Assembly (NCBI RefSeq): GCF_031769215.1 | Contig: NW_026782056.1 | Location: 496,001-560,000, forward strand | Direction of reading: 5' to 3' | Length of the DNA: 64,000 nucleotides | Origin: Ylistrum balloti | Taxonomy: Eukaryota | Shown: piece by piece, positions 13,168 to 64,000 of the stretch | How the letters are laid out: each line of letters begins with the position of its first letter | Numbering within the stretch: position 1 is the stretch's first letter | Position numbers and translations under genes: made by a program | The notes under the pieces: model-generated | What the model saw: only the letters and a program-made list of their open reading frames with translations | Database searches by the model: none | What the model was told of the DNA's origin: nothing

Positions 13168-13395
13168 AATTCGTACATCGTCTCTTCTCTTTCCTCTCCA
13201 TTCTCTCATTCCGCCCAACTCTCCTTCCAACATTCGTACATCATTCTCCTCCTTCCTCTCCATTCTCTCATTCCGCCCAACTCGCCTTCCAACATTCGTA
13301 CATCATTCTCCTCCTTCCTCTCCATTCTCTCATTCCGCCCAACTCTCCTTCATACATTCGTACATCATTCTCCTCCTTCCACTCCATTCTCTCCT
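13168..13395. repeat. 62-63-bp pyrimidine-rich tandem array, about 4 copies
   Basis: TCGTACATC anchor at 13171, 13234, 13296 and 13358. Confidence 0.9.
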
Positions 13396-31300: not shown

Positions 31301-31440
31301 ACGGTTTCTTTCTTTCTTCCTAAGCATAATCGATGAAATACAGATTGGTCATCGTCGAACAAATATTTTCAACTTACATTCTTTCATGCCTTTTGTTACA
31401 TTCATTTGTTTGAATATTATCTAAGGAAATTATTTTAATT

Positions 31441-32169
31441 CATGTTTCCGTGAATACTGTATAACAATTGTTGTCATGTTTCCGTGAATACTGTATAACA
31501 ATTGCTGTCATGTCTCCGTGAATACTGTATAACAATTGTTGTCATGTCTCCGTGAATACTGTATAACAATTGTTGTCATGTCTCCGTGAATACTGTATAA
31601 CAATTGTTGTCATGTCTCCGTGAATACTGTATAACAATTGTTGTCATGTCTCCGTGAATACTGTATAACAATTGTTGTCATGTTTCCGTGAATACTGTAT
31701 AACAATTGTTGTCATGTTTCCGTGAATACTGTATAACAATTGTTGTCATGTTTCCGTGAATACTGTATAACAATTGTTGTCATGTCTCCGTGAATACTGT
31801 ATAACAATTGTTGTCATGTCTCCGTGAATACTGTATAACAATTGTTGTCATGTCTCCGTGAATACTGTATAACAATTGTTGTCATGTCTCCGTGAATACT
31901 GTATAACAATTGTTGTCATGTTTCCGTGAATACTTTATAACAATTGTTGTCATGTTTCCGTGAATACTGTATAACAATTGTTGTCATGTTTCCGTGAATA
32001 CTGTATAACAATTGTTGTCATGTCTCCGTGAATACTGTATAACAATTGTTGTCATGTCTCCGTGAATACTTTATAACAATTGTTGTCATGTTTCCGTGAA
32101 TACTGTATAACAGTTGTTGTCATGTCTCCGTGAATACTTTATAACATTTGTTGTCATGTTTCCGTGAAT
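31441..32169. repeat. 34-bp tandem array, about 21 copies
   Basis: Unit CATGT(T/C)TCCGTGAATACTGTATAACAATTGTTGT, containing the palindrome AACAATTGTT. Confidence 0.97.
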
Positions 32170-39537: not shown

Positions 39538-42500
39538 CTATTGGTTACAAGACGAGAGGGATAAGTATCAAATCCACAAAAATTAAATGGTGGTTAATCA
39601 ATCCATCAAACTATCATGCTAATGTTGTTTAACTTGTCTTCAACTATTAATGAAAATTAACTTTGCAGTATTACACAAATACTCAAAAGATGATAAACCA
39701 TGGTTTTACATTAACGCGAAAACACAAAGTTTCTGTCCACGTTCTATAGTACGGACAAGCGAATTGTCAAATTTTCGAGGCAACTTGCCCCTTTATCAAG
39801 ACACAAATATTACATGAATTACATCACCTACACAGAACATAAAACAAATACATAGTTATCAATTTAGATCGAGAGCGGTTGTGTAAATTATGGTGTCGCG
39901 ATAATGCCTTCGACCGATGGAAGCCGGAGGCCCTTTATAGCGGATAAAAAACCATCCCAAGTTGTTGTATGGAAGATGGTGATTAAAATACAAAAAAATG
40001 TTTTATATCAATCTCGGAATGTTTTGCACTGTAGACACTAAGCGCATATATGATTGCATGTCACACTCCGTGGAAAGTAGTCTACCGGTACATCTCGGCC
40101 ACATTGCATTGTTTTATTATAAATAATCATAATTTATTGTAAAAAGTTGTAAACTGTATATGCAGTTACAATAAAAAGTGATTTGATGAAANNNNNNNNN
40201 NNNNNNNNNNNNNNNNNNNNNNNNNNNNNNNNNNNNNNNNNNNNNNNNNNNNNNNNNNNNNNNNNNNNNNNNNNNNNNNNNNNNNNNNNNNNNNNNNNNN
40301 NNNNNNNNNNNNNNNNNNNNNNNNNTTTTCCGGTCATGCACAACATGTTTATTATGTCTTCAAATCATTACAACTCGCGGTGATATTTTATATTTTGATA
40401 TGTCTCGAGCTAGGAAATGCATCTCTTTAATAGAAATCTTATTTGCATCATGCGATTGGTTATCGATCTGATGTTTCTTTATTGTACTGGCTCACCAGCT
40501 AAAACATGGTTATATATCGAGAGAATAACTTTGAACTGTACTTATTTCTGAAGGTATTGAAGTGTGATTTGATTAAATCATACTTACATATCTGTGCACA
40601 CGACTGTGTTCCTTATGTTGTCCAGACATGTACATCTGACATCACATCCATCTGTATAGGTCTCAGTGAGGTTAAGATATTGGGTCTTGTATTGACAGAA
40701 TCCTGTTACAAAATAAGTAAATTCCGTCTTATGTCTGCGTCTTTAAAAATAATGACATCAAAGGAGGCTGCTTCATGATTTCCAGACACACATAGAAACT
40801 ATCTTAAGTTCTTGCAATATATATCTATGACATCAATAATAACAAATGGATAAATAAACACCATTAGTGTTACATTGGCGATATGTAAGTAGAGTTGGAG
40901 AAGACGGCCATAAGTAGGAAGTGGTGACAAAGCTTCAGATCAAAAGCGTCAATTAAAGGAAGAGAAATGATGTGTAAGTTATCAGAACAAGCTAGATCTC
41001 TCTGACGTCAATATACTTTTCTAAAAATCTTGAATGAACGATTTGTCTATGTCTTATAAGGTACTTCTGTGTTATATTGAGAACGTTTGTCGAAACAACA
41101 TGATTTAAATTGTTTTGAAATGACTACGAAAAAACAGCACGATGAGTTTACGGCTAAACCTATGTAGGCAAATGTAGTGTTATTGATGACCTCGACTTGT
41201 ACAGTATCGTTACAGTGCCTAAAGATTTGACTATAAGCATGGTATCAATACTTTATATTAGTGATTAGAAATATATCATTTCCATTAGAGATGCTGCTAC
41301 ATCGATCTTAAAATCAAAACCAACCACAACCCAACGTAAACCAGTTTTGAGTATAAAATGCCGATAAGAGCAGATTGAGGTTGTTGCGCTGGAGTCCAAG
41401 GGAGGACCTCAAGTGAGAAAATCAAGATTATTTATATTGAAATTGATAACGAACTCCAATAAATATCATTATATGATAATACTATTTACCAATACAAGCA
41501 TGATCGACGCAAACGCATGTAAACTATTGCACGATATTTTTATCAGACAAACGAACGACTAACGCCATAACACCAGATGCATCTTACACGTATGTTTGAG
41601 GGAAACAAGGAAAACTGACTTACCAGGCTTGTCCGAAGGAGGTCCCTCGTATGTATGTGACAAAAGCTGTGAGGCGGCAGTTAAGTTTCCGGATGTTGGA
41701 GCAAGATTCGATTGTTTTGAAGGAGCAAACGGTTGTGTTACAGCTGTGTTGAAGAAAGACGGACATAAATAAATACGATGTTTTCTACCAAATAGACTTT
41801 GTGTACAGACGGATAAGAACTGTGATGTGGTATAAAATTCGAAACGAGGAAACAAATATCTGCTGGCAGAACATTCCTTTTTAAAGCGATTTCTGAACTC
41901 AGTCGTGAAATTAGTTAGACGGTTAGACAACCGTCAAAAATATTTATACTGCAAGGATACTACAGCAATGGCGAAATTAAACAAAATACATTTTTCACTG
42001 CAGATTTAGAATGAATACAGTAGAGCCAAATACTAAGATAGACCACATCATAGGGCTGTGCTTTTAGCGCTCATCAGTGATGCTAAGTACTTGCATTGTT
42101 GAAACCAATGAAGCGACACAGGAAAATCTGTGTAGGTCTCATAATATAAAAACTACATAAAGCAGATAATTGGAAGCCCTATCTCTAAATTCAGTCGATT
42201 ACATATTTTTCGATAAGATATTTAAAAAAGTGAAGATCCGTTTATTCTGAAACATGTTACCACATGGATGAATGAAAACTTTGCATACAGGTTACGGCAA
42301 ATCTCAGGGACTACAAGTCCAGCACTGTTCACTAAACAACAGTAATATAACACCTTTCAATACAAACTAAATGGAAGATGTCATCATTTAACTTTTTTAT
42401 ATAAAGTCCAAGTTTTGTAAAATCACAAAAGTTTTAAAATATCGTTCTTGTGTTCAGTGAATTCCCCGTACCAAATTATGTAAAACATACATTTACTAAT

Positions 42501-45500: not shown

Positions 45501-48500
45501 AAGGAACAAATTAAGAATCAAATGCATTAGAATCAAGTGACATAATAAACTGCATCAAACAGCTATTTCGTCCCTCTGTGACTCGTCGTTGCTGAACAAA
45601 CAACATTTGTCTAGATAAGTTAGCCGTTCTGTAAAAAATAGACACCATGGCTTATGGCGAAAAGAAAAACTGAAAATAACAGAATATGTTGGCAGAAATC
45701 ATTTCAAATCTATAATCATCATAATTTTTCAGTTGCTTACTATTGCAATCTCTTAATCTACTCCAACCGTTAGAAAGAACAGAAATAAAATGAAATAATG
45801 AAAATGCAAATCATATGTCACAAAGGATTAACTTAGTAATGAACATACTTACTGTCACACAGTTTACAGAAAGCTCGGCAGTTGTCCTCTCTGAAAATCT
45901 TAAAGATGGGATTGGTACACAAGTCATCGTTGTACTCATTACAATTTGACAAGGTGTCCTGACATGGAGGAGGTGTTGTAGGGGCTGTAACATTCACAAA
46001 AAAAGTTCATTGACTACGATCAGAAGTATGAGATACAAAGCGCAATAGGTATGACCAATAAGTCAGACAAAACGTATTGAGCATGATCAGAAGTAAAACA
46101 ATTGAATATGATCAGACGGCAGACAAGGCTTATTGTGTATGATTAGAAGTAAGACAGACTAATTGAATATGATCAGACGGCAGACAAGGCTTATTGTGTA
46201 TGATTAGAAGTAAAACAATTGAATATGATGCAGACAAGGCTTATTGTGTATGATTAGAAGTAAAACAATTGAATATGAGACAAGGCTTATTGTGTATGAT
46301 TAGAAGTAAGACAGACTAATTGAATATGATCAGACGGCAGACAAGGCTTATTGTGTATGATTAGAAGTAAAACAATTGAATATGATCAGACGGCAGACAA
46401 GGCTTATTGTGTATGATTAGAAGTAAGACAGACTAATTGAATATGATCAGACGGCAGACAAGGCTTATTGTGTATGATTAGAAGTAAGACAGACTAATTG
46501 AATATGATCAGACGGCAGACAAGGCTTATTGTGTATGATTAGAAGACAGACTATTGTGTATATGATAAAACAATTGAATATGATCAGACGGCAGACAAGG
46601 CTTATTGTGTATGATTAGAAGTAAAACAATTGAATATGATCAGACGGCAGACAAGGCTTATTGTGTATGATTAGAAGTAAGACAGACTAAAACAATTGAA
46701 TATGATCAGACGGCAGACAAGGCTTATTGTGTATGATTAGAAGTAAGACAGACTAATTGAATATGATCAGACGGCAGACAAGGCTTATTGTGTATGATTA
46801 GAAGTAAAACAATTGAATATGATCAGACGGCAGACAAGGCTTATTGTGTATGATTAGAAGTAAAACAATTGAATATGATCAGACGGCAGACAAGGCTTAT
46901 TGTGTATGATTAGAAGTAAAACAATTGAATATGATCAGACGGCAGACAAGGCTTATTGTGTATGATTAGAAGTAAAACAATTGAATATGAAGACAAGGCT
47001 TATTGTGTAATTGAATATGAATCATGATCAGACGGCAGACAAGGCTTATTGTGTATGATTAGAAGTAAAACAATTGAATATGAAGACAGACAAGGCTTAT
47101 TGTGTATGATTAGAAGTAAGACAGACTAATTGAATATGATCAGACGGCAGACAAGGCTTATTGTGTATGATTAGAAGTAAGACAGACTAACCTTATCGAG
47201 TTTGATCAGAAGGAAGACAGACAAAACGTAATGAGTATGCTCAGAAAACAGACAAAACATATTGAGTGCAATTAGAAATAAGACAACTAAGCTTATGGTG
47301 TATAATACATACATAAACCCTTGTTCGCATCACTGAAACAAATACCACCCAATACGCATTAGGGTAATTATACAAATGCCAAAAAATAAGCTGATGGGCG
47401 ATTGTTTACCTATTTAAAGTGCCATATTGAACCATATTGAAGGAGACAATATTTTGTTAAATATATCAAAGTAGGTTATTTCAAGTTGTCAGAGATGATT
47501 TGTGACAGGAGTTCCTACGTTTTTAATTTAGAAAGGAGTTCTAGATAGCTTACTCTGTGAGATCATTCGTAAGTTGTGATTACTTATCTAAATATATTGT
47601 TGATGTAACAATGGTTTGTTTACATTCAGTGCTTAATTGTTTACACGAGTTCGAATTCATTGTTGGTGGGGAGAGGGGTTCATTCGGTATTTTTAAGAAA
47701 AATTCTTACCTCCGCAGAATCCACAGAATTTGCGACATCGAACTTCAGCCCAGGGTCTGTATGGCCCCTCGACACACACTTTATCGAAACCGTATTGTCG
47801 ACAATTTGATAATTTGTCTTCACAGACTAAAACAAATCATCAAATATACAATGAAATAATATTAAAGTTGGAAATGAATGCATAAAATTAATTAATAACT
47901 AGGTATATCGGGTATAATAACAGTCACGGGAAAAAATGACATTTCAGCACCAAAATCAGAAATCTTTCCAAAGTAACAATGTATTTGTCCACTTGGCAAT
48001 GATTCTTCATTTGGAAAATAAAAATCAACCGAATCACCTACTTACCTTCCGTGACACCTGCAATGGTAATGTCAGAAGTGTCATACTAAGATACTTACAT
48101 GCAAGACGAAACATCTTATTCATTGTAAGAAATAACATATTGCAAAGCCATGATAATAAATTATCCCGACAAAACACATATCATTTCATTTATATTTAAA
48201 TATCCTGACGCTGTCTGACGTCAGAACTTAATATATTTACTGTAATTATATTTGAATACACACACACGTTATTTAAGGGTAAGTGTAAATGCAAAGTGAT
48301 CCTGGAATAAAACAGTGTGGGTTCATGTTCCTTTTTGTCCCCAATCGTGTGATTTAATGTATGTTATACATTGTAATTTTAGCCAATGAACCGGCATTCA
48401 AACATCCTAAAAGTAAATATTATGTAATTGTCTACAAAAACAGATATTGTCAAGATTCGTCACGTCATACTTGTCACAACCTTCCACAAACGTGCCAGTA

Positions 48501-51500
48501 CTAAGGACCAAAGTGTCAGACAAACTCTATTTTATCACGAGGCTAATTGTTGGAAATTCGAACATTTTAGAAAATAGTCAATCAATTATACAGAAAGTTT
48601 GACAGATGATAAACTTAATTAAGATAGGAGAGAGTGAGAAAAGGAGATAAGATAAACGAAAATATGTAGCAAGCTCAAAATTCATCAAATTCATATTAAT
48701 CCTTTATCATCAAATGTGGAAATCACAAATACCGGCATTAGTTGTTACAGAGGGGCCAGTTGAAGTAGGTGGTACTGTAACAGGACCAGCTGGTGTCTCA
48801 GACGGAGGAACTGTGTCCGGTCCTGAAGAGGGTCCTGTGACTGGTTCTTCTGTTGTTCCTGTCGCAGGTTGTTCTGTGCTTCCTGTGGCTGGTACTTCGG
48901 TTGATCCTGTCGGGAGTTGTTCTGTACTTCCTGTAGCTACGACTTCAGTTGAAACCAAACCAGGTTGTTCTGTTGTTACATTAACTGGCACTAATACAAT
49001 TTATAAGAAAAAAAATCTATAGAAAATATCGCAAAAAAACATTAGTTCGATTTACGTTATGAATTTTTATGATTGGGCATTTAAGTTCTGTAAGCACATC
49101 TTCATAATCAAAAGTTATAGGGAGTGAACTGCATATGAAATAAGCAATCCAATACACACATTGATAACTAAAATTGAAGAAAGATATATGACTCACCACT
49201 GGAAACTGATGGTGTTGGTACACCAGAATCTGTTGTCAAATCAGGTCCATTTGAAGGTGTTGGTACGCCTGAATCTGTTGTCACGTCTGGAACTGATGGT
49301 GTTGGTACGCCTGAATCCGTTGTCACGTCTGGAACTAGTGGTGTTGGTAGGCCTGAATCTGTTGTCATGACTGGCCCATTTGAAGGTGTTGGTACGCCTG
49401 AATCTGTTGTCAAATCAGGTCCATTTGAAGGTGTTGGTACGCCTGAATCTGTTGTCAAATCAGGTCCATTTGAAGGTGTTGGTACGCCTGAATCTGTTGT
49501 CACGTCTGGAACTGATGGTGTTGGTACGCCTGAATCTGTTGTCCCACTAGGCATTATTGAAGGCGTTGGTATGCCTGAATCTGTTGTCATGATTGGACCT
49601 GATGGTGTTGGTACGCCTGAATCTGTTGTCACATCTGGCCCATTTGAAGGTGCAGATACGCCTGAATCCGTTGTCATTTCAGGTCCATTTGAAGGTGTTG
49701 GTACGCCTGAATTTGTTGTCACTTCTGGTCCATTTGAAGGTGAAGATACACCAGAATTGGTTGTCATTTCTGGTCCGTTAGAAGGTGCAGATACGCCCGA
49801 ATCCGTTGTCACTTCAGGTCCATTTGAAGGTGTTGGTACGCCTGAATCCGTTGTCACTTCTGGTCCATTTGAAGGTGAAGATACACCAGAATTGGTTGTC
49901 ATTTCAGGTCCGTTAGAAGGTGTTGGTACGCCTGAATCCGTTGTCATTTCAGGTCCGTTAGAAGGTGCAGATACGCCAGAATCCGTTGTCACTTCAGGTC
50001 CATTTGAAGGTGCAGATACGCCTGAATCCGTTGTCATTTCTGGTCCTTTTGAAGGTGAAGATACGCCTGAATCTGTTGTCACTTCAGGTCCATTTGAAGG
50101 TGCAGATACGCCTGAATCCGTTGTAATTTCAGGTCCATTTGAAGGTGCAGGTGTTGATAACCCAGAATCTGTTGTGTTTTCTGAACCGCTGGGTGACTCG
50201 GTTGTAACGTTATCAGTTGACGGAGCCATTTCGGTAGAGGTGGGACCCATTTCTGTTGTAGTTGGGGTTTCAGGGGGAGATTCGGTTGAGGTTGCTGGTG
50301 GAGCCTCGGTAGAAGTTGTCGTTGGAGGGGCAGGCCCTTTTTCGGTGGTAGTTTTTACTGGTCTGACTGGAAACGCTAAAACATTTTAAACATATCGTTA
50401 ATAATCAGACTTCAAACAGCAGACAACAACATTTAAATACGAACGTTGGAGGAGGTCTGCTGTCTGTGATAAATTTAATATCATCTGATTATATCATTGC
50501 TTGTTAAAAGGAATATTTCATTTCTAGTTTTGAATTTGAATTCATCCTAAATTTGTATCAAAAGGTGCTATTCACTTGTATGTTTTTTATGTGTTTTGTA
50601 TGTGGTTTAGAAAACTTGCGGTTTCTGGCGTAAATATTACCCGTTCATTATAACACTCAATCAAATTAAAAGATGTTCTTCGCTTTACCTGGTTCAACTA
50701 TTTCCGCGCCAGTTCCCTCATTTTCGGGGGAGGGAAGTGCTGGAGGGGGTTCCAGAGTAGTAGGCGCCTTCGTGGATGGAGGACTCTCCGTGCTGGTCTG
50801 GGTGGTAGGGGGTTTCTCTGTCATAAAGCCATTTGGTTCTGCTCCTGTACCGGCTTGCCTCTTCAACGCTTGATTCAATTGATGATAAAGTTATAACTAT
50901 TTTATAATATTATACACGGGCAGAGCGTCAACGATTACTAATACATGAATATTTTTAGTATAAAGTATATGAAAAAAATAAGAAATACCGCCATGCTATT
51001 CAAAAATAAAACATTCTTTTTCTATAAAGGTTACATACCTACGTTTATAACCATTGAACGTACTAATTAATGTATAATCCTATATAAACATGCTTCACGA
51101 ATTAGTAAGAAAATAAAAAAAAAAAAAAATGAAATATCCTTACTCGTGACTGCTTCACCTAATTTTATTTTAATTAAATAGATTTATTTTTATCATTAAA
51201 AATTCATATAGAAATTATTTCAAAAATAAACTTCAAGATATTTTAAATAGCATCGAACGATCGAGCGAATATCACATGGGGTAAGTGTGGTGTTTGTACA
51301 TTGAATTCGACAAAGACGATTGTCCTTAGTCACCATACAGAGTTCATCACTTCAGACCCGTATCATCTGTGACTTTTAAGTACGGAGCACTATTTCTTGT
51401 TCTGTTTTACAAGTGCACAGTTTCTATCTTTCAATTTTATTGAGAGGTAATATTCACTAAATGCATGTATCTGATCCGCTCTTTGTATATCGCAGTCACA

Positions 51501-54500
51501 ATTAGGCCTAACACTCATTATTAAAAAGGTTTTTATCACATAAACACTACAACCTTTCCAAATAGTGATATCCAGTGGGATTTAATATATCTTAAGTTTA
51601 CCACATTAAGAATAACTATATTCTGGTCTCATGAAATAAAATCATTAAAAAATAAAATTTGTTACCATTTCTAATATGTAGAGTTGGTAAAAATCGCGGG
51701 TATCTAATTTCGCTACTTTCCCAATGATCAAAGACAGCGCGAAATCACATTCGAAGCAATCATTTGACGGATAATCATAACTCAGGAAATGTATGTTTCC
51801 TGTATAACCAAATAGCAATGTATTGACATTGACACAAAACTTAATCCTGGTGAATTAGCCCAAACTATAATGACCGCGAAATATTAGCCAACGAAACTGT
51901 AAAAAATAAATAAGTAACCCAACATGTACATATTGTTTTGAACATATAGAGTAAACACTTCAAAACACTTCTTAAATATAATCTGAACACTTATATATCT
52001 CGCGTTTAAATTTCAGATATACTGTATTGCATTGATCATTTTCTAGGCATGTTAATGTAGTATGGCTTTGTGAGATAGTTTTGTTCTGATTTCATGACTG
52101 TTTTAATGTTCTGTATAAGGTTTACTTACATCGCAGAGCAGGAACATTTCTCTTTCCGGGAAGGTTCGGTACGGCGAATCCTGAAAACAAGAAGAAAATG
52201 TATTAAACATAACCACTTTGTAAAGAAGGGTTTATCTTTAACCCTAAACAAGGTCTCTTTGAGTGTCATAACTTAAATAATCAATGTTTGCTAACACACA
52301 CGCGAGCAGCGATTTGATATACATTCTAATTGCTTCAGTTATGACCTCACAAATTCTTGGTGTATTTAATGGGAAGGGAATCTGTTCTTATCATACTGAA
52401 ATAGCAATACAATCTCCATAGTGGAATATTCGTTTACGGATCATGTGGGATTAATGAAATTAATCTATTTCATAAATTCATTTCGCATAGTATCAGGACA
52501 ACGAAATAATGAAGCTTTTATTGTAGGTCTGCTAACGTCAGAATAACAAGATCACAGAACGCAAATGAATACTGGCACGTAAGTCTATGTCCGCAAATGA
52601 GAGTGGATAGTAAAAGAAACTAATTCGAAGAAAGGTTAAAAGTATCTGTAGGTTATAAGGTATCACCATATAATGATGTAGAGGTTTTAAAAAGAAGTTT
52701 TTTGTAGTTGATCAGATGTGAGCGCAATGTGAATGTATTTAAGATGTTAAGTAATGGGTTAGATATTATTGTCCATCTGTATATCGATATAATTAGCGTG
52801 TGTCATCACACAAACTGTTCTTTTCTGGAAAATACTTACAATTAATGTATCTATTGGTAGAAGTACACTGGTCATTACAAAACATTCAATGTTGATGTGT
52901 ACATCAAAAGATTGCCAAATGAATACAAACGTGAATAACATTGAAATAAAATTGATTTGTAAACATCACCGAACAAGCGAGATCAGGTATGCTTTATTAA
53001 GATTTCGATACAAATGCTTTTGAAGATGACCCAATTGATTAATGAAGAATTACAAGTAAACACACCAATTAGGCAATATTTCTAATTTTAAAATAAAGCT
53101 AAATTTGTTAACGTCAACAAGCAGCAGGTAAAAAGCTTGATATAATGGGTTGTCAAGCAAACAGTTCAAATAAAGCTGGATACATATCGTTCATCAAGCT
53201 AGCGAAGTGGATTACATATAAAAAAAGCTCGTTGTACAGGATCAAGAATACTTTTCTAAAACAAAGCTATTCGTATATGGTCAACAAATATATTACAATG
53301 CTCACAAGAAAGCCTGAAGAGTAAATACCAGCGATTTGATGATTTGTTACATGTAACTATTGTAGGTATCATTTCTAAGACATATTTTCATCACCACAAG
53401 GGGCAATATTTTAAGTATATATATTTGATACTATGTTGACATTTGGTGGAATGTTTGCTAGTAATCAAGGGGCAAATAGCCGAACAGGATAACCTCGTCC
53501 TGCGAAGTCACTAAGCATTGCCATGAACCAAGTAAACAGCGCCAACGTCATAACATCAAAAACGTATTGACAGCTTTTTAGCCAATCAGTTCACAACACA
53601 ACGTTGCTTCACAATATGATAAAAAAAGGACCAGCATCTCAAAGCGGCATCATTTAATAACATAGCTAAGCAGCAGGATCCGAGTCGATCATAAAGATGG
53701 ATGTTGACCTGGTGCTGATGTTGCTGGGATAGGATTGTTAAAAGACGGCGTTACAGCACCCGTTCCTGAAAACACAATCTATAGGTATCAGTTTCTAACA
53801 CATGTAATATTTCATTTACGAATTACTTGAATGATCTTTCTAATGCTATCAGAATATATCGGAAATGCCATGGTTACTTTCAGATATAATACGGAGTTTT
53901 AGTGATAACAATAAACTTATGACAGTAATTGCATATTTAGTGAAGCGCAAAGCAGACTTACCTATAATTCACAAGCTGCATATCCAGCAATGAGTAGCTT
54001 AATCAATAAGTTAGCGGTTACCATGAGAAATGCGCGCGATTACAATTAGAAGCAAAAACCTGTTTGATCTTCCATCACAATACCCGTAAAGGCGTAAAAT
54101 GACAGAAGTTCTTAATTGACTGAAATAGCGTTTGGATTAATTTTTTTTGTATTTATATAACCGCTCTCAAATAAATAATAATAACATAACACTTATTCAA
54201 TTAATCAAATTTCAATCATTCATAGACCAAATAACATTCAAATCACACAGTACTTGTAAAATGATATGCATGCCATACAACTGTAAAGAACACCAATACA
54301 ACTACACCAACGGTACGGCGTAATCCACGAAAATAGCTGTACAAACATACCGACAAACAATACATCTCAGGATATAACAAAAACGTGAAACCATACACTA
54401 TCTCTACAGCAAAATCAACATCATACAACACTTTAATTATATACATTTCATTACAAGCAACACAAAAGTATATATCGAACTGCAATCACCATAAAAAATC

Positions 54501-57500
54501 TAAAATTAAATAACCAACAGATATGTTATCAACAAGATAGTATAAACGCTATTAACCAAACAATATAAAGCAAATCAAATCCATTACAGAAATATTGTAG
54601 AGCTAACAGTATTAACAAACTCCAACACACAATAGAAAATACAACACTGTAATATTGTGTAGCTTATCATAAAACAAGACTCCATTAAATTATGTAGCAA
54701 CTTTATTTAGGTAACTATATAAAAAAAAACACCACACAGGCTAAAATAACTTTAAGCCATCAAACCACTTAATAACCTTTAAAAATGTAAATAACAATAT
54801 CAAAGAATTTAAAACCACTTAAATAAACACTCCGTCACCAAACAAATACATTACTATTTCATCCATAAATTTCTATACAAAATTCCACGCTAAACAATGA
54901 AAACTCATGACATTAAGATCAACGATTTACAAACAATGGAAAGCCATACCACTACAACATAAACAGTAGAATATTGTCAGGCACAACTAACGATTTAAAA
55001 ATATAAAACATACAATATGATATAAATCTACCAGGAAAAGTTATGTACCCAGTACAAAACTATATATTGTAGCTCACCTCCGCTACCGCCACAAAAGCCA
55101 CAGTGTTTCCTACAGTTATCCATGGCCCATATATGGTACTGAGAGTCTGTACAGGCTGATTGTTCATACTGATCACAGCTGCTGATATTGTCGACACAAG
55201 CTGGTGGAGGGGTTGGCACACCTTTCAATAGGACATGTGATATATATGTAGTCTATTGCTGATATATAAAAGTAACCCTTTCTCAGATGGGTCCAAATAA
55301 TAATAATTATAATGCAAACACTTCCCCAGAATGACACACAATGGACGCCATCGATGATTTGTAGATTCATTGTAGAAAAAAGAAAACAATATCCCAACTG
55401 CTATTCAATAACTCCTTTATAACTTAAGGTAAAAAAAGTGATTTTTTTCAAATGTGTTATATTTCTGCTTTAGGTGATCTTCTTGGAATTTGGTGAACTG
55501 ATAATGATTTGTAAGTGATTCTGAACTCCCCTATTGCTGCAAGGAAACTTTATACGCTTTCCTTTGTCTCCTGTTTCTCTGTGTCATATATTTTGCACCA
55601 ACGTCCTATGAAATATATTTGAAATGCAAAATGTTTTCAACGGCTGCCTACGAAATCGATTAGGCTAGGGGCCGCTTGTTTTAGGGATAAGAATTCTTGA
55701 TTATATGTCAATGAAAGTTGAACTGCATAGTCGGTAATGAAACAAAAACAAACTCACCAGCACAGAATCCACAGTAATTCATACAGTTCTCTTTAGCCCA
55801 GCCCTTGAAGTTACCCGAACAGGAACTCTGGCCGTATAACCGACAGTCCACCTTGTCCACACATTCTAGACATTGGGAAAATATCATCTGTATTTATCAC
55901 TATAACCGTTAGAAAAATCGTAAGGCTGATGGTATGAGAATGGCATCAAGTTGTTTATTTGTTATCATTATGTTATGTTGACAAATTTGATACAGAAATA
56001 GCTAAACCTTCAGTGTGAAAAATGAAACATTATGACATTCATATATTGTTGTTGACATATTTTAACATATTCATTGTTCAGACTGCCACGTTTCCCTATA
56101 ATTTTGTCTAATAAGTATTTTTTATTAGGATGTAATATATAAATGTGTTGTAAACACCAATGCCATTAACTTATTATTTTCAATATATTGCTGAGGAACT
56201 CTTACGAAATTAAAAAACCTTCTGCGTGTTATAAAGAAAGAAGAAAGTTTTTAAAGATTACCGACGTGTACGGCAAATTCAAAAATTAACTTCAACACAT
56301 TCGATGTGGACTATATACGGAAATTGATCACGATAAGTAAAACGCACAAAGTTTACACAGTACTTACTTTCGGGTGCGATAGTCGTGGTCATTAAGTCCG
56401 CCATTTGAAGTTGCTGAACTGTTGAAAAAAACGATATCATGTTACTCATTCATATTCTGTTCACTTTTCCTTAATTGATTGTGAAGTATTTAAAATGTTA
56501 TTGTCAAATTATAGCGTCAATATCAGTCGGTGTATTATGTACGTTCAAGAAGTTAGGACAGTATTGTTGTATTTACTGAAAACGTCCGTCAGTAAACAGT
56601 TGTACATGTTTTGTTCAAGATTGACCCTGCATGCAAATTCCCGATACCAATTCTAGATAGTTTTTCCTAACAGCTACGGCTAGGTTGTACCATGTACAAA
56701 CTCGTACATAAAAGTTCTCATACCATGTTTGGCAAATAAAGGAATTTATAAACTGAAGAAAAAAACTTTTCAATGCTTAACACAACCGTACATTTCAACA
56801 ACAAACATCGAAGTAGATATAAACATCGTCCCCTTTTCATCATGAAATTTAAGGACAAAACAAAATACAAACTGTCTTGTAATGATACAATATTATGAAA
56901 TAACAAAGCTTGCGTCATCCTGTTTTCAACACCTTCACATAAAACTGGGAATCAAAGAAAACAATAAACGACGCCATCATAAAGCGAGTATGTAAATCAC
57001 ATCTCCCTCTGATTTCAACACTTTTCTTAATATTTTCAATATATCCCTGTACAATTTCAACATTTTCCTCTAAAAGTTCAATATTTCCTTCAACATTTCC
57101 CTCTACGTTTTCAGCATTTCCCTCTTCATTTTCAGCATTTTCCTCTACATTCTCAATATTTCCCTTTACTTTTGCAGCAATTCCCTCTAAATTTGCAGCA
57201 ATTCCCTCGACATGTTAAACATTTCCCTCTTCATTTTCAACATTTCCCTCTACATTTTCAGCATTTTCCTCCACATTTTCAATATTTCCCTCTACTTTCC
57301 TTCTTCATTTCAACATTTTCCTCTACGTTTTCAGCAATTTCCTCTACACTTGCAGCAATTCCCTCGACATGATCAACATTTCCCTCTTCATTCTCAGCAT
57401 TTTCCTCTACATCCTCAATATTTCCCTCTACATTTTCGACATTTTCCTCTACATTCTCAATTTTTCCCTCTACTTTCCTACTTCATTTCAACATTTTCCT

Positions 57501-60345
57501 CTACGTTTTTAGCAATTTCCTCTGCATTTGCAGCATTTCCCTCAACATTGTCGACATTTTCCTCTACGGTTTAAACATTCCCTTTACATTTGAAACATTT
57601 CTTATTGCATTTTTATCGTTGTTCTCTGCAATTTCAACATCTTCATCTGAATTTCCGTAATTTTCTTTGCAACGCCCCTTTTTACATTTGTAACATCTTC
57701 CACTACATATGGTCAACACTTATTTCTACATCATCAATGTTGCTCTCTACATTTCTAACATTTACCTCTATATTTTCCTCATTTACCTGTACATTTGCGG
57801 CAGAAATAACGACAGTTTTCCTGGGCCCATGTTCCATACTGAGGGTCATTACATACGTTCTGTCCGTACGCCTCACAGTTCTGAAGCTTGTCCACACAAG
57901 CTGGCGCGGGTGTGGTCGGGCCTTCAAACAACGATCAATCAACGATGTTAGGTTTGAGATGATTCAAAATTGGCAATGAAATACAACTGTCACTATAAAG
58001 ACAGACTATTGTGAAAATAACGAATTTGTAATGCAGAAAAAACACACTTTTTTACTTCGAAGTTTTGGTAGAGTCACAAGAATATGATACTTATAGTGCA
58101 TTAAGTTGAAATGACATATTGCTTACCGTTACAGAATCCACAAAAGTTACGACAATTGTCTTGAGCCCACTTGTCGTATGGAGGTACACATGACTCTTTA
58201 CCGAATGCCACGCAGTTCGCTTGTTTATCTACGCAATCTGTCATTCAAGCAGTGCATATTTATAGACTTACGTAACTTAACTATTTAGACAAGTTGGAGA
58301 AATACAAATTGTGCAGATATATTGCAAAACAAATATCAAACATCAGTAACTTATAACATCGATAACCTCATTCATTTAGCATATCAATCTATTGAGTAAA
58401 TACTGATACAATAATGTTATATAACATGCTATCAGACTAGATAATTCACCCTAACCAATACACATTACGGAGAATTCAGAATCATTTTATCATTTTTCGA
58501 GTCTAGAAATGTACCTTCATGGCTCTGAATTTACTTCCTCCTTCCTCAAAAGTTTCTTTGTTTCTATTTGTTTCTTACATTGTTTCTATTTGTTTCATGC
58601 CAACAGCAAATACAACAATAGCCTAATCCCGATTTAATCTCATATTAAGTGTTACAATAGGTTTTGTCAATTATGAAGTGTCTATGTATGGATTGTTGTG
58701 AAAACGATGAAAACAACAAAGTAATCAACACCAACGATACATGCAAAGGCACAAACCACATGCATATACATCCTGAAATCGTCGCGACTTTTTACCTTTA
58801 CTCACCTTTTATGAAAATCCTCTTTTTTGTGTAAAAATCACGTTTGTTTCGACTTGGTTTTCTTTGCGTCACCAATAAAGCGAAAATCCCGAAAGACAAT
58901 TCACGGGAGATCACCCGGTGATCATGCGCGACACACGAGTCTGATAAAGATCGAGTTTCTAAAAGCGCGGTAAGAAATTTCACATTTAATACAACCACTT
59001 GACAAACAGACACATATCCTATCACCACTGTACATAATGACACCATGCTGGCTTATATGGGATTTCTATATTAAGTCTGAGTTCACAGGAAAGCAACATT
59101 CCTTGCGAAACCATATCTACAAATAAGACAAGAGTGTAAGTCGCCCAAAGCGTAATAAGCAATGATCGTCAACAGTGTGGCGTTTACCAAATGAAGTACA
59201 TTATGTATTTTCCTGTTGACAAGTTATTTTATACATTGTAGTGGACCTGAGATTACAATAGGGTGATAAACTTTAACTAAAACAAGATGTAAGAAAAGTA
59301 TATGACATTGACCTCTAGTCTAGATATCGGTCTTTTTAGAGCAAGTGATAAGAGACACAATGTAGAGGGCAATGTATACATCATTTCCGGTAATGACCTG
59401 ACCACCGATTTAACACGTATTCAGTTCAATTTACTCTTTTTTTTCATCATGAAATTGCATCATTTTCTGTTAACACTTGTGTTATGAAAATTGTTCATTT
59501 AAAATTACTTTTCGGGATTTTCTATCAGTCAAAATAATAGCTTAAGTTACATCCAGTCATTAAGGTGAATTTTGTTATAATTTTGGAAGCATTGAATAAC
59601 TCGAATTTCTTGGGAACATGTTTCATCAAATAGAGGAATACGATTTCGAATCAAGCAAGGTTTACTGTATATTTATCTACCAAATTTCTGTAAAACCTCA
59701 TCACGACTTTATCACTTTATTACTTTATTAGTGTCACGAGCATATGTTCAATGTTCCAAAAGATAGCTACTTTACCTTACACAGCTGTTATGCTCGATTA
59801 TGTCATTACAATTGCTACCCTTTGCTTTCAGGTCCGATACAATGGGACAATCCGTGATTTTTATTTCATTTTAAAATATTTCTTTGGTTTATATAAGAAA
59901 TTATATGCCATGTCCTATACTAACTTACAGACGATTGGTGATAATGGTAATTCTATACACGACATTTATTTTCTAATTTATTATTATTTTCTTAATACCC
60001 TATGTCAATTCAGACGCCACATGCTGTTTAACAGCTTACGCTGATTCACTCAATACTCAAGTAAACTGGGGAAAGTCAGAATTTGTTAGCAAGCAGGAAA
60101 GCGAAAGCAGATCATACACCTGTCACCAATATTTTCAATGAAAATGAACTCTAAATATTGAATGATGAGAAAACTGATAGAAGAACTATTAGCATACTTA
60201 TATCTACTCCGCCACTATTCAGTTGAGGTGCTGGCGTCTGAGTTCCAAAAAACAGCGAAAATCCACCATCGTCTCGTTTGTTGTCGGGAGCAACAGCAAG
60301 CGTTCCCGCTAAACACAAAACAGAGATACACAAAAAGGACAACAT
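39405..60345 (-). CDS. 21-exon gene for a secreted protein: 8 ShKT domains, a mucin/Ser-Gly repeat region and a C-terminal VWC-like domain (1134 aa predicted)
   Basis: The hand-assembled exons all have AG/GT boundaries and compatible phases (19 phase-1 introns, last intron phase 2). They sum to 3405 nt, from ATG at 60345 to TAG at 39405, with no internal stop. Domains were recognised from cysteine spacing. Confidence 0.85.
40192..40325. other. Assembly gap (134 N)
   Basis: Run of N inside the last intron of the ShK gene. Confidence 0.99.
40588..40702 (-). CDS. Exon 20: VWC-like domain, first half
   Basis: aacag|..FCQYKTQYLNLTETYTDGCDVRCTCLDNIRNTVVCTD..|gtaagt; C-x-Y...DGC..C-x-C..C pattern; ends in phase 2. 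Confidence 0.85.
41624..41743 (-). CDS. Exon 19: S/P/T-rich linker
   Basis: tctttcttcaacacag|VTQPFAPSKQSNL...GPPSDKP|gtaagt; 120 nt. Confidence 0.8.
42901..42951 (-). CDS. Exon 18: linker
   Basis: tttgtctcacag|PVRPSSVPGSGNTTGT|gtatgt; 51 nt. Confidence 0.8.
43326..43445 (-). CDS. Exon 17: ShKT8
   Basis: atcag|..KLEACADKDPLCKEYGEDLCTTYEGFARENCKSFCSLCG..|gtatgt; 120 nt. Confidence 0.93.
43851..43918 (-). repeat. Dispersed repeat family A, copy 4 (core, intronic)
   Basis: The minus strand reads GACCAGGTGTTCGGAAGGATAAACGTCTTCTGCTTTATCGA. Confidence 0.6.
45079..45201 (-). CDS. Exon 16: ShKT7
   Basis: ttttcag|..LLTDCRNIRTDCDYFPDSSCFGDYEAWARRNCALRCGYCP..|gtaaca; 123 nt. Confidence 0.93.
45403..45462 (-). 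CDS. Exon 15: linker
   Basis: ttttatag|PIAPPTTQAPSTTLDPIMQ|gtaagt; 60 nt. Confidence 0.85.
45853..45984 (-). CDS. Exon 14: Pro-rich linker and ShKT6
   Basis: tacag|..PTTPPPCQDTLSNCNEYNDDLCTNPIFKIFREDNCRAFCKLCD..|gtaagt; 132 nt. Confidence 0.93.
46084..47190. repeat. Intronic 56/61-bp tandem array, about 19-20 units
   Basis: Unit AAAACAATTGAATATGATCAGACGGCAGACAAGGCTTATTGTGTATGATTAGAAGT, with a variant beginning AAGACAGACTAATTG. Confidence 0.95.
47710..47826 (-). CDS. Exon 13: ShKT5
   Basis: ttttag|..CEDKLSNCRQYGFDKVCVEGPYRPWAEVRCRKFCGFCG..|gtaaga; 117 nt. Confidence 0.93.
48046..48057 (-). CDS. Exon 12: 12-nt microexon (GVTE)
   Basis: ttaccattgcag|GTGTCACGGAAG|gtaagt; phase 1-1. The frame is kept whether or not it is included. 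Confidence 0.6.
48733..48990 (-). CDS. Exon 11: PTS-rich segment
   Basis: gtattag|PVNVTTEQPG...SVTTNA|gtattt; 258 nt. Confidence 0.85.
49197..50375 (-). CDS. Exon 10: mucin-like exon with 22 x 14-15-aa repeats
   Basis: gttttag|FPVRPVKTTTE...(TDSGVPTPSNGPEVT)n...SVSS|gtgagt; 1179 nt open frame. Confidence 0.9.
50689..50868 (-). CDS. Exon 9: KR site and PTS-rich segment
   Basis: aag|LKRQAGTGAEPNGF...EIVEP|gtaaag; 180 nt. The acceptor choice is uncertain (alternative CAG with exon start at 50844). Confidence 0.75.
52130..52180 (-). CDS. Exon 8: GKR-containing linker
   Basis: ttttcttcttgttttcag|GFAVPNLPGKRNVPALR|gtaagt; 51 nt, with a strong acceptor and donor. Confidence 0.8.
53709..53765 (-). 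CDS. Exon 7: linker with a weak donor
   Basis: gtgttttcag|GTGAVTPSFNNPIPATSAP|gtcaac; 57 nt. Read-through reaches TGA at 53689-53691. Confidence 0.7.
55078..55221 (-). CDS. Exon 6: Pro-rich linker and ShKT4
   Basis: aag|..VPTPPPACVDNISSCDQYEQSACTDSQYHIWAMDNCRKHCGFCGGSG..|gtgagc; 144 nt. Confidence 0.93.
55758..55865 (-). CDS. Exon 5: ShKT3
   Basis: tag|..CVDKVDCRLYGQSSCSGNFKGWAKENCMNYCGFCA..|gtgagt; 108 nt. Confidence 0.93.
56368..56418 (-). CDS. Exon 4: linker
   Basis: ttttttcaacag|VQQLQMADLMTTTIAPE|gtaagt; 51 nt, phase 1-1. Confidence 0.8.
57030..57785. repeat. Degenerate ~21-bp pyrimidine-rich intronic repeat
   Basis: Motif CATTTTCCTCTACATTTTCAG/CAA with many substitutions. It explains the FQHFPLH-type ORFs and fades out at the exon 3 donor. 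Confidence 0.85.
57787..57921 (-). CDS. Exon 3: Pro-rich linker and ShKT2
   Basis: aag|..PTTPAPACVDKLQNCEAYGQNVCNDPQYGTWAQENCRYFCRKCT..|gtaaat; 135 nt. Confidence 0.93.
58127..58237 (-). CDS. Exon 2: ShKT1
   Basis: cag|..CVDKQANCVAFGKESCVPPYDKWAQDNCRNFCGFCN..|gtaagc; 111 nt. Confidence 0.93.
60198..60345 (-). CDS. ShK gene exon 1: signal peptide and KR site
   Basis: MLSFLCISVLCLAGTLAVAPDNKRDDGG...VDI; in-frame stop upstream of the ATG; donor A|GTATGC, phase 1. Confidence 0.8.
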
Positions 60346-62230
60346 AATTTGTTCGTCGAAATTGACAGGGATCTACACAGTACACCGCACACTGTAGACC
60401 GACCAATGCCGACTACGAAAAAGGACAGGATTTTTAATTCTTCAGTGCCACCACAGCTTACTAGGGCGAGCGATAAGATAAGGAGGCGCCACCTGTCGGA
60501 TTCCCGAACACAAACCAAACTTTGGTGGCTGTACGATATGACACGGTCATCGCAGACTTGGTGTTCTGATGAATTTAGGCAAAACTGGGGCCATATATTA
60601 TTTGAAATACGGTTTTAGTCTGTGTACTTAAAATCATATCAATTATTTAGATGGTCGCGCAACCAGAATGATCATAAATAAGCATAGTCACTTCCGAAAT
60701 ATTACAATTCAATGTAGAATTATCATTTGTCATAGAATAAACCATGGTCATAATTTGTTTTCTGAATTTGGAAAAAAATAAAAAAAAAAAAAAACAATCA
60801 TTGAAATCATCAATTTTGGACAATGAAAGCGAATGAATAGGATTAATCGTGAAGAGAACGAAGGCATTATTGAGTTTAACTATGACAATAACAACAAATT
60901 AACGAAAAGTTCAATGATGTACTTGAATATTATTTTTAGAAATATAAAGTAATATTTAAATTATCCCTATAACTAAATTCATTTTTGCGTATATATTCTT
61001 ATTGACAAAATTTGAGTATAAAGCTTGTTACAAATATGGTATGCGTCTCTTTGAGTATGGATAGATTAATTAGGAAAATATATGGTTTAGATTTTATGAA
61101 GTTTTCATCGACAAAAACAGAAACAAAACAAATCAATAAAAAAACTCCCAAAAAAACAGAATCTTCATTTTAGCTTGAGGTCGATATAACGCATTGCTAT
61201 TTGAATTTTTTTGAGATTTGAAAATTAAAGAATTAACATCTTTAATTCAACAAAGTGAGGACCGAAACCAGATATTTTGGAACACGTGGCCTAACAGTGG
61301 TAATGACGTTATCAACCGTCGTACATCGTCGTCTAGTTATCTACTGCACCGAGAAGTCATACTGACTGATTTTAACTTGTTCTTTCATATGTCCTTGATC
61401 ACTTCACAATTCTACACTTCCATTGATTCCTCGGCTGACTTCTCTCTCAATAAATAATATTCTCATTGATGTACTCTCATTCTTCTTTTAACCATCTCCT
61501 TTTCCTTTCTTATGGTCATATGTTTAATTTTTTTCTTTCCTGTGATTCCACTTTTCCATTCCATACCACGTACCCGTCTTATTATTTTGATTCTGCTATT
61601 CAAGTCCTGTTTTCGATACATTCTTAACCTGTACTTTCCTGTTTTACTTTTTCATCCTGACCATGCTCTGTATTTTTCGTCACACATTCTTCGATATATA
61701 ATGCAATTGTATCTGCATTAGTGGAAGCAGTAAAGATATACAAAGAAAAATAATAATACATCACAATACAAAATAATGAACAATCGATATGAACATTTCC
61801 AAACTGTGTTCAAGGAAATGACTTGTGAAGGGGTAAGCACTCATTATCATTACTTCTCTATCATCTTGCTTTAAAGCTACTGCCTCCAGCTACCAGAAAA
61901 TGCATATTTTCATTGTCTTCTTCTCTAGGAAGCTGCGTGATGGACGTGCTCAAAATATCTAAAATCTCTTGACAGCATTCATCTGTTATGCTTACCGATT
62001 AAATTTAAAATTTACCCCGCCCTAACTGCTCAACTTATATCCGTTTCCATAATTCCAGTCCTTTCTATCTTCTCTAGATATCCTTCACCATCCAACTCCT
62101 CTCCCTCTCTTAATTCATGTCTGTACCCTTTCTACCTCTTGTCCATATCCCTAACTGTTGAACTGTTGATGTCAAACTCATCTGTCACTCCCTTAATCTC
62201 AGCCCTATCTACCTCCCCCCCCCCCTCCTT

Positions 62231-64000
62231 GATGTTCCCTAACTGTCCAACTCATCTCCCTTTCACTCTCGTAGTCTCAGTCCTTTCTACTTCCCCTTGG
62301 TGTCCCTAACTGTCCAACTCATCTCCCTCTCACTGTTTTTATCTCAGTCCTATTTATCTTCCCTCCATGTCCCTAACTGTCCAACTCATCTCCCTCTCAC
62401 TGTTTTAATCTCAGTACTATTTATCTTCCCGCGATGTCCCTAACTGTCCAACTAATCTCTCTCTCACTCTCGTTATCTCAGTCCTATTTATCTTCCCTCG
62501 ATGTCCCTAACTGTCCATTTCATCTCCCTCTCACTGTTTTAATCTCAGTCCTATTTATCTTCCCTCGGTGTCCCTAACTGTCCAACTCATCTCCCTCTCA
62601 TTGTTTTTTTCTCAGTCCTATTTATCTCCCCTCGGTGTCCTTAACTGTCCAACTCATCTCCCTCTCACTCTCGTTATCTCAGTCCTATTTATCTTCCCTC
62701 GGTGTCCCTAACTGTCCAACTCATCTCCCTCTCACTCTCGTTATCTCATGTCCCTACTGTCCAACTGTCCTAACTGTCCAACTCATCTCCCTCTCACTCT
62801 CGTTATCTCAGTCCTATTTATCTTCCCTCGATGTCCCTAACTGTCTAACTCATCTCCCTCTCACTGTTTTTTTCTCAGTCCTATTTATTTTCCCTCGATG
62901 TCCCTAACTGTCCAACTAATCTTCCCCTCACTCTCGTTATCTCAGTCCTTTCTTCCCTCGATGTCCCTAACTGTCCAACTCATCTCCCTTTCACTCTCGT
63001 TATCTCAGTCCTATTTATCTTCCCTCGATGTCCCTAACTGTCCAACTAATCTTCTCCTCACTTTCGTTATCTCAGTCCTTTCTTCCCTCGATGTCCCTAA
63101 CTGTCCAACTCATCTCCCTCTCACTCTCGTAGTCTCAGTCCTTTCTACTTCCCCTCGATATCCCTAACTGTCCAACTAATCTCTCTCTCACTTTCGTTAT
63201 CTCAGTCCTATTTATCTTCCCTCGATGTCCCTAACTGTCCATCTAATCTTCTCCTCACTCATGTTATCTCAGTCCTTTCTTCCCTCGATGTCCATAACTG
63301 TCCAACTCATCTCCCTCTGACTTTCGTTATCTCAGTCCTATTCATCTCCCCTCGGTGTCCCTAACTGTCCAACTCATCTCCCTCTCACTCTCGTTATCTC
63401 AGTCCTATTTATCTTCCTTCGATGTCCCTAACTGTCCAACTAATCTTCTCCTCACTCTCGTTATCTCAGTCCTTTCTTCCCTCGATGTCCCTAACTGTCC
63501 AACTCATCTCCCTCTCACTCTCGTAGTCTCAGTCCTTTCTACTTCCCCTCGATGTCCCTAACTGTCCATCTAATCTTCTCCTCACTCTCGTTATCTCAGT
63601 CCTTTCTTCCCTCGGTGTCCCTAACTGTCCAACTCATCTCCCTCTCACTGTTTTAATCTCAGTCCTATTTATCTTCCTTCGATGTCCCTAACTGTCCAAC
63701 TAATCTTCTCCTCACTCTCGTTATCTCAGTCCTTTCTTCCCTCGATGTCCCTAACTGTCCATTTCATCTCCCTCTCACTGTTTCGTTATCTCAGTCCTAT
63801 TTATCTTCCCTCGGTGTCCCTAACTGTCCAACTCATCTCCCTCTCACTCTCGTTATCTCAGTCCTATTTATCTTCCCTCGATGTCCCTAACTGTCCAACT
63901 CATCTCCCTCTCACTCTCTTTATCTCAGTCCTATTTATCTTCCCTCGATGTCCCTAACTTTCCAACTCATCTCCCTCTCACTCTCTTTATCTCAGTCCTA
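62231..64000. repeat. 63-67-bp pyrimidine-rich tandem array, about 27 copies, running off the right edge
   Basis: Unit GATGTCCCTAACTGTCCAACTCATCTCCCTCTCACTCTCGTTATCTCAGTCCTATTTATCTTCCCTC, with shorter variants. Confidence 0.95.

Follow-up and report, generated by a model that had tools for sequence, protein, structure and literature searches.

Does one scallop gene encode both a diffusible and a mucin-attached set of ShK (ShKT) domains, separated by processing of the kind used for peptide hormones? The question is raised by a 64,000-nucleotide stretch of the Ylistrum balloti genome (assembly GCF_031769215.1, contig NW_026782056.1, positions 496,001 to 560,000; the window in what follows), which carries on its minus strand, at about 39.4-60.3 kb, a pectinid scallop gene for a secreted polyprotein. 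A reading made from the letters of the window alone (the sequence-only reading) had noticed dibasic sites bracketing the first four ShK domains, and proposed that a single precursor yields an amidated protein of about 235 residues, an octapeptide and a pyroglutamate-capped mucin-ShK chain. From comparison with molluscan relatives, we judge it somewhat more probable than an even chance that cleavage and C-terminal amidation release a four-ShKT protein from the mucin polyprotein. Two of the refuting conditions that the sequence-only reading had set itself, concerning exon 8 and the conservation of the dibasic sites, were examined, and both results speak for it. The precursor interpretation is upheld as regards exon 8, the conservation of its site and the endings of free-standing relatives, but not as regards the octapeptide, a VWC domain, or the N-terminal dibasic site beyond scallops.

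The predicted polyprotein opens with a signal peptide and a short pro-piece ending in K-R, followed by four ShKT domains (the first tetrad) and a proline-rich tail, probably without structure, that ends L-P-G-K-R; after an 8-residue spacer come a further K-R followed by Gln, the mucin chain, four more ShKT domains and a cysteine-rich C-terminus. K-R is the site recognized by PC1/3- and PC2-type convertases, and a Gly before basic residues is the signal for peptidylglycine alpha-amidating monooxygenase (PAM). According to the proposed pathway, a KR-specific proprotein convertase of the secretory pathway would cut after R262 and R272, a carboxypeptidase would trim off K-R, and PAM would use the Gly thus exposed to leave a Pro-amide at the C-terminus of a four-ShKT protein of about 235 residues. 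The spacer would be discarded, and the new N-terminal Gln of the mucin-ShKT chain could cyclise to pyroglutamate. Both modifications occur in scallops, since a Yesso scallop peptide that is pyroglutamylated as well as amidated has been confirmed by mass spectrometry (PMC5996578).

Candidate processing sites and exon 8

All three motifs are on the minus strand where the sequence-only reading had placed them. Exon 1 reads M1...P20-D21-N22-K23-R24-D25, with K23-R24 at 60279-60274. The inner codons of exon 8 read F-A-V-P-N-L-P-G-K-R-N-V-P-A-L-R, with the GKR of the first internal site (site 1) at 52157-52149, and the first bases of exon 9, CG, complete a split serine codon (T, then CG) that is followed by L-K-R-Q, placing the KRQ of site 2 at 50863-50855. 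The numbering G260-K261-R262 and K271-R272-Q273 matches the exon-length arithmetic, and the bounds given earlier for the bracketed region are exact, 60279 being the first base of K23 and 50857 the first base of Gln. Furin-type sites were considered and rejected for this species, P4 being Pro at site 1 and Ser at site 2, with no Arg at P4; the furin pattern R-x-K/R-R does fit the second sites of some orthologues.

The scarcity of such sites within the protein can be gauged in the orthologue from Pecten maximus, where the 838 residues outside the ShK domains are 2.9% basic and contain dibasic pairs only at these three sites (0.69 expected). Three dibasic pairs are reached in 2.7% of shuffles (P = 0.027), and 2.4% hold any Gly-basic-Arg. 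This within-gene excess would be modest evidence by itself.

Sequence alone does not require exon 8, because its 51 nucleotides (nt) are open in all three frames and skipping it keeps the frame. Its acceptor is CAG with a 13/14-pyrimidine tract, and its donor is GTAAGT. When both strands of the window (128 kb) were scanned for strict splice patterns, only five candidates passed; among these exon 8 has the best acceptor, and its pattern is the strongest. The RefSeq models of two other scallops include it. Pecten maximus XP_033756388/89 (1121 and 1105 residues; isoforms X6 and X7) is 70-92% identical to the window when the exons are compared one by one, and has exon 7, exon 8 (12/16 residues identical, F-P-G-K-R-N) and exon 9 (S-V-K-R-Q). 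In Mizuhopecten yessoensis XP_021340504/05 (X3 and X4) exon 8 is identical at 15/16 residues and reads L-P-G-R-R-N, a Lys-to-Arg change at site 1 that leaves the pair basic. These models rule out that exon 8 is a decoy. The window contains no repeats or second copies of exon 8, so the exon lies outside repeat elements.

A 153-nt stretch in intron 1 (58806-58958, minus strand) also passes the splice scan, but nothing in the proteins of Pecten or Mizuhopecten corresponds to it, and it is probably a decoy. An 18-nt microexon encoding 'L-T-P-Q-I' in Pecten and Mizuhopecten X3 was not found in the window's intron.

Reading past the exon 8 donor (52129-52089, minus strand) gives R-C-K-stop, halting after two codons. 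In the NCBI annotation of Mizuhopecten X3 and X4 exon 8 likewise runs on into the intron and stops there, and over the start of this intron the window and Mizuhopecten can still be aligned. This read-through region may be an alternative 3' end that yields a short tetrad protein.

Conserved sites and free-standing tetrads

Relatives were gathered with HMMER, by running the ShK4 exon against 1.84 billion representatives, and by a word search with a family alignment, and the names of the bivalve relatives were taken from cluster look-ups. The HMMER search gave no near-identical protein but retrieved the family, and the sole additions from a word search with Pecten X6 were a unionid form and a single relative derived from a transcript. 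The exon 9 peptide alone gave no match in a word search whose length filter shuts out long relatives. We compared 15 long forms: those of the window, Pecten, Mizuhopecten, four Mytilus species, Mercenaria, Ruditapes, Mactra, Mya, Dreissena, Sinanodonta, Potamilus and P0212 (a 677-residue open reading frame on a 2238-nt contig).

The expectation that the dibasic sites are conserved is well supported by these sequences. At site 1, following the first tetrad, Gly at P3 and Arg at P1 are present in 15/15 long forms, P2 is Lys in 14 and Arg in one, and P4 is Pro in ten. Between 7 and 63 residues separate the last Cys of ShK4 from the Gly, and the neighbouring linker is unalignable; the site itself spans pteriomorph, heteroconch and unionid bivalves. 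Site 2, K-R or R-R followed by Gln, lies 6-10 residues past site 1 in eight long forms, and in P0212 the two are merged into R-G-K-R-Q, where a single site supplies both the Gly and the Gln. It is unreadable in Mizuhopecten, which is represented by short isoforms only. Further R-R-Q sites occur more downstream in Mya, and Mytilus isoforms that end in a ShK domain (4 species) have an extra P-S-A/P-G-K-R followed by an acidic 12-residue tail. Conservation across lineages is what carries the argument over chance, and strongly, with the reservation that homologous sequences are non-independent trials.

Two other sequence features were noted around these sites. Heteroconch and unionid forms (P0190, P0196, P0008, P0158, P0009, P0211 and P0001) have, behind site 2, a conserved module rich in His that is made up of Q-F-H/S-A-S/N-H-H-H, a C-W-D stretch with two cysteines after it, and the motif F-P-G-S-E-F; this module is lacking in scallops and Mytilus, and in Mya it is repeated behind R-R sites. 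The N-terminal motif G-F-x-L-F-F-G-T of scallops and Mytilus (window 60270-60230, minus strand) is echoed just past the cleavage sites, as N-G-F-M-T-E-K-P in the window (50830-50805, minus strand) and N-V-F-F-G-T-D-K-P in Mytilus. Both the motif and its echo precede, sooner or later, four ShK domains, and two related units may have been fused in the long protein.

What seems to us the most telling result comes from proteins about 250 residues long that have a signal peptide, four ShK domains, a Pro-rich tail and nothing else. These free-standing tetrads are found in Haliotis (two species), Pomacea and Mytilus, where one paralogue is known from five species and a second from three. Every one of these proteins has Pro-(x)-Gly-Lys, Gly-Arg or Gly-Arg-Lys just before the stop, and their tails align with the first half of window exon 8. 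Stop codons were read in the genomic DNA of four fetched loci. The genomic ends are GGA AAA TAA in Haliotis, GGC AAG TGA in a neighbouring Haliotis cracherodii paralogue, GGA AGG AAA TAA in Pomacea and GGC AGA TAA in Mytilus short-2, and none of these stops is a disguised splice donor. Endings in Gly-Lys/Arg-stop are the pattern expected if the C-terminus of the mature tetrad is a Pro-amide. The four-ShKT protein with its Gly-basic end is an old molluscan unit: gastropods and mussels have it on its own, whereas in the long forms of bivalves it is joined, through this candidate processing site, to a mucin chain behind it.

The tetrad genes are clustered in two of the genomes. In Mytilus trossulus (CM071705.1) three paralogues, the long mucin gene and two short tetrad genes, share a stretch of about 80 kb (fetched locus L001, 18786-18812 and 41114-41160; L004, 9408-9440). 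Haliotis cracherodii JAJLRC010000009.1 (L005, 1-28503) has a tandem same-strand array of three ShK tetrad genes encoding 246, 256 and 245 residues, the first two of which end in Pro-Gly-Lys-stop.

An AlphaFold2 model of the Haliotis tetrad has a mean predicted local distance difference test (pLDDT) score of 57.6, with the domains at 64-80 and containing short helices, and is too weak for a fold search. The tail scores below 45 and is probably disordered and accessible; a tail predicted to be unstructured would suit access by processing enzymes, although the model is weak overall.

Alternative explanations

Several observations weigh against release of an amidated tetrad. The Mytilus short-1 gene ends in GGT AAA TGA, which is a read-through of the donor-like GGTAAATGA, and the donor of a 27-nt microexon in the Mytilus long gene would, if left unused, give P-G-K-stop, as in the neighbouring short gene; some of the endings at Gly-Lys could therefore have arisen incidentally when genes were truncated. 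The short relatives in oysters, like one further cluster, end differently and lack a Gly-basic terminus. Site 2 is missing in the four Mytilus species. The NKR-D site described after the signal peptide is present in the window sequence, where the N-terminus is hydrophobic with small residues at -1 and -3 as judged by eye, but among species the N-terminal KR is confined to the three scallops; in most other species Gln directly follows the predicted signal-peptide cut (cut sites again judged by eye). The spacer between sites 1 and 2 is not conserved either, being 6-10 residues long and variable in sequence, with none in Mytilus. Because it varies so freely between the sites it looks like a connecting piece and not a product, and we reject the conserved bioactive octapeptide that the sequence-only reading had counted among the products. 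The conservation counts themselves rest on homologous sequences and not on independent events. A regulated secretory pathway equipped with PAM is normally required for amidation and is not known for the cells making this mucin, and PAM substrates are usually peptides, so that an amidated protein of 235 residues would be unusual. Literature and accession searches found no cleavage, amidation or pyroglutamate products of this family. A further point is that a short diffusible module could also be made in another way, through the annotated read-through isoforms of Mizuhopecten.

Four other explanations have to be set against these data. The convertase could cut the dibasic sites without any amidation following, the Gly being kept for flexibility or for a Pro-Gly turn, so that the tetrad ends in a free or Gly-extended carboxylate. 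Conservation of the dibasic pairs is equally expected on this account, mucin-secreting cells are not known to amidate, and the furin-pattern second sites of Mercenaria, Ruditapes, Dreissena and P0212 point to enzymes of the constitutive pathway; the window sites, however, lack Arg at P4 and fall outside that pattern. Against this account stands also the Gly itself, which is invariant in 15/15 long forms at P3 while P4, P5 and P1' vary, and which the free-standing forms keep together with a basic residue and the stop; because those forms need no endoproteolysis, presentation of the site to a protease cannot explain the Gly. We regard cleavage without amidation as unlikely. Quite improbable, in our estimate, is a route through RNA processing, in which the short tetrad is made from transcripts left unspliced after exon 8 and the spliced mRNA encodes an uncut tetrad-mucin. 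It draws on the two NCBI isoforms of Mizuhopecten (X3 and X4) that extend from exon 8 into the intron, the R-C-K-stop of the window, the P-G-K-stop read from the 27-nt microexon of the Mytilus long gene, and the alignable intron start. The Gly-basic motif would, with the same low probability, matter mainly to the short product, but the scallop read-through product has residues after G-K/R-R, so a cut would still be needed to expose the Gly. The conserved second site with its Gln, found in the spliced form only, and the merged G-K-R-Q inside the long transcript-derived P0212 are left unexplained, and the long isoforms compared from Pecten, Mercenaria, Ruditapes and Mytilus all keep the site in frame and internal. 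The RNA route and proteolysis can coexist.

There may also be no processing at all, the basic motifs serving in an intact protein as a binding or structural element (for acidic glycans, for shell or mucus matrix, or as a hinge). The long acidic and neutral linker has no other basic patches, and nematode ShKT-mucins are described as intact surface mucins, as cited in PMC7333891. Yet a binding patch is not expected at the exact end of free-standing homologues, nor would it be expected to require a Gly that never varies in front of it and a Gln behind, and the spacer between the sites has been free to vary; we give this explanation little credence. Least credible by far is chance, that is, ordinary KR dipeptides in a long protein together with a fortuitous open stretch between splice signals. 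The 51-nt stretch is open in three frames and frame-neutral when skipped, and the dibasic excess within the protein reaches just P = 0.027, but the recurrence of exon 8 in two other scallops (12/16 and 15/16 residues) contradicts it, as does a motif kept across pteriomorph, heteroconch and unionid bivalves.

Cleavage with amidation is therefore the explanation that we prefer, and it permits a bolder and more doubtful one: the tetrad is possibly an unrecognised mollusc-wide secreted factor capped at both ends, which in bivalves is cut from a mucin carrier. With Gln or pyroGlu at the N-terminus in most species and a Pro-amide at the C-terminus, it might tentatively be seen as having the design of a hormone, pheromone or mucosal effector, and intron read-through could conceivably act as a back-up route to the same product.

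Gene structure and comparison with known systems

The gene model was built from a stop-to-stop scan, direct reading of exon borders and a coordinate script, which gave eleven 5' exons; residue numbers are arithmetic on the exon lengths, and exons were searched and aligned singly. All introns of this eleven-exon chain are of phase 1, and exons 1-7 sum to 148+111+135+51+108+144+57 = 754 nt. All exons are on the minus strand. Exon 1 (60345-60198) has the start ATG at 60345, the hydrophobic signal peptide and K23-R24, then D-D-G-G-F-S-L-F-F-G-T, and aligns with the Pecten and Mizuhopecten N-termini. ShK domains 1 and 2 are encoded by exon 2 (58237-58127; phase 1-1) and exon 3 (57921-57787), with Pfam PF01549 scores of 23.7 and 28.2 bits. 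Exon 4 (56418-56368) is a 51-nt linker between ShK2 and ShK3 with the inner codons Q-Q-L-Q-M-A-D-L-M-T-T-T-I-A-P-E, found also in Pecten, Mizuhopecten and other bivalves. Exon 5 (55865-55758) encodes ShK3, which at 17.5 bits is below the gathering score and has the six invariant Cys in the alignment, and exon 6 (55221-55078; an alternative in-phase donor lies 9 nt upstream) encodes ShK4 (26.5 bits) and closes the first tetrad. The 57-nt exon 7 (53765-53709) is a Pro/Ser/Thr-rich tail with a homologous stretch in the Pecten and Mizuhopecten models, and it is followed by the 51-nt exon 8 (52180-52130), with L-P-G-K-R-N as the candidate cleavage and amidation site. Exon 9 (50868-50689), 88.5% identical to that of Pecten, starts with the (S)-L-K-R-Q that forms the second candidate cleavage site, exposing Gln, after which the Pro/Thr-rich chain begins. 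Exon 10 (50375-49197; 1179 nt) is a Thr/Ser/Pro repeat of a 45-nt (15-residue) unit in about 21 copies (49207-50147), and these long tandem Pro/Thr/Ser repeats mark it as mucin-type; exon 11 (48990-48733) is a second Thr/Pro/Glu-rich exon.

The downstream part of the gene begins with the second ShK tetrad (47836-43327), the cores of which lie at 47824-47714, 45964-45857, 45187-45083 and 43431-43330, with splice sites unrefined and a small linker exon near 45463-45401. A C-terminal linker exon (about 41750-41622) and two Cys-rich VWC-like exons (about 40709-40587 and 39593-39408) follow. A run of 134 N at 40192-40325 separates the last two Cys-rich exons and appears to be intronic, because the Pecten protein is continuous across that point. 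P0179, a 348-residue open reading frame on a 1325-nt contig, joins eight of the 3' exons without introns and therefore gives transcript-derived support to the downstream model.

By Pfam, the product belongs to the ShKT domain family. Searched singly against PF01549 (gathering cut-off 20.9), five of the window's eight domains reach 23.7-28.5 bits, ShK3 (17.5 bits) and ShK8 (19.6 bits) are slightly under the cut-off and ShK7 is without a match; six invariant Cys columns run through all eight cores in the alignment, and the whole Pecten orthologue scores 83 bits. At E <= 0.01 Pfam finds only ShK in the Pecten orthologue and no match in the two C-terminal window exons, with no VWD, CTCK or VWC, so the VWC domain that the sequence-only reading had named in its mucin-ShK-VWC chain is not detected. 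PF00093 is carried by a weak Mytilus edulis relative, and 'VWC-like' denotes in scallops a resemblance only.

Other features of the window include an intron-less open reading frame of 555 residues at 24214-25881 (plus strand) for a rhodopsin-family seven-transmembrane receptor (PF00001, E = 1.3e-69), with no record of the exact product in the assembly collection. Intronic tandem repeats within the scallop gene lie at 57089-57601 and 46100-47303 (21-nt and 56-61-nt units), the former creating long spurious reading frames on both strands between ShK2 and exon 4. A 340-residue reading frame antisense to the mucin exon (49367-50389, plus strand) is a mirror of the 45-nt repeat and does not point to a gene. 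Large minisatellite arrays occupy 1-1869, 13391-14756, 17046-19887, 31440-32188 and 62227-64000, with units of 67, 51, 43/129, 34 and 67 nt in 12 to about 80 copies and a strong strand composition skew.

If the cuts and the amidation take place, peptide-hormone processing would here act, unusually, on a large protein of several domains that is joined to a mucin. This would also define a conserved molluscan family now labelled only 'uncharacterized', 'mucin-2-like' or 'titin-like', and provide a starting point for the roles of multi-ShKT proteins in mollusc mucus and tissues. If the sites are unused, this is an ordinary ShKT-mucin gene with a conserved basic linker. Literature and accession searches found no paper on a ShK tetrad-mucin family, and a survey of scallop neuropeptides makes no mention of ShK (PMC5996578).

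Among the closest counterparts are RefSeq models from bivalves that carry the names 'mucin-2-like', 'mucin-5AC-like', 'titin-like' or 'uncharacterized' (Pecten maximus XP_033756388/89, Mytilus trossulus XP_063433371-80, and models in Mercenaria, Ruditapes, Dreissena and Mya). They are true orthologues or paralogues, with automatic names and no described function, and share with the window gene the N-terminal tetrad, the Gly-dibasic site, the mucin middle and further ShKT domains. Their C-termini differ, with a CBM_14 chitin-binding domain in Mytilus, the VWC-like exons in scallops and ShKT only in heteroconchs. The sea-anemone ShK-type channel blockers such as the Stichodactyla ShK toxin have the PF01549 family and the six-cysteine pattern in common with the scallop protein, without a named match. 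A PDB sequence search with the Haliotis tetrad and a profile search with the window's eight domains returned no match even at E <= 1, so that these searches show no close relation to a solved ShK toxin; toxin-like activity is neither shown nor implied.

The gene would seem, by analogy, to work like a prohormone- or toxin-type polyprotein and to be built like a ShKT-mucin. On the latter side, the nematode mucins Tc-MUC-1 to -4 of Toxocara canis (PMC7333891) are also secreted and also combine a Ser/Thr/Pro mucin core with six-cysteine ShKT domains; no layout of a tetrad plus processing site is described for them, the animals belong to another phylum, and the likeness is one of shared domain type. 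On the former side, precursors of hormones, neuropeptides and toxins that are processed by PC1/3 or PC2, carboxypeptidase E and PAM, among them those of molluscan neuropeptides with scallop examples in PMC5996578, have in common with the predicted scallop precursor the signal peptide, the dibasic K-R and the Gly before the pair, as well as the Gln after a site, a discarded spacer, and free-standing homologues ending in Gly-Lys/Arg-stop. They differ in that the unit predicted to be released in scallops is not a short peptide but a four-domain, 24-cysteine protein of about 235 residues, and that the other product would be a heavily repetitive mucin-type chain of about 860 residues.

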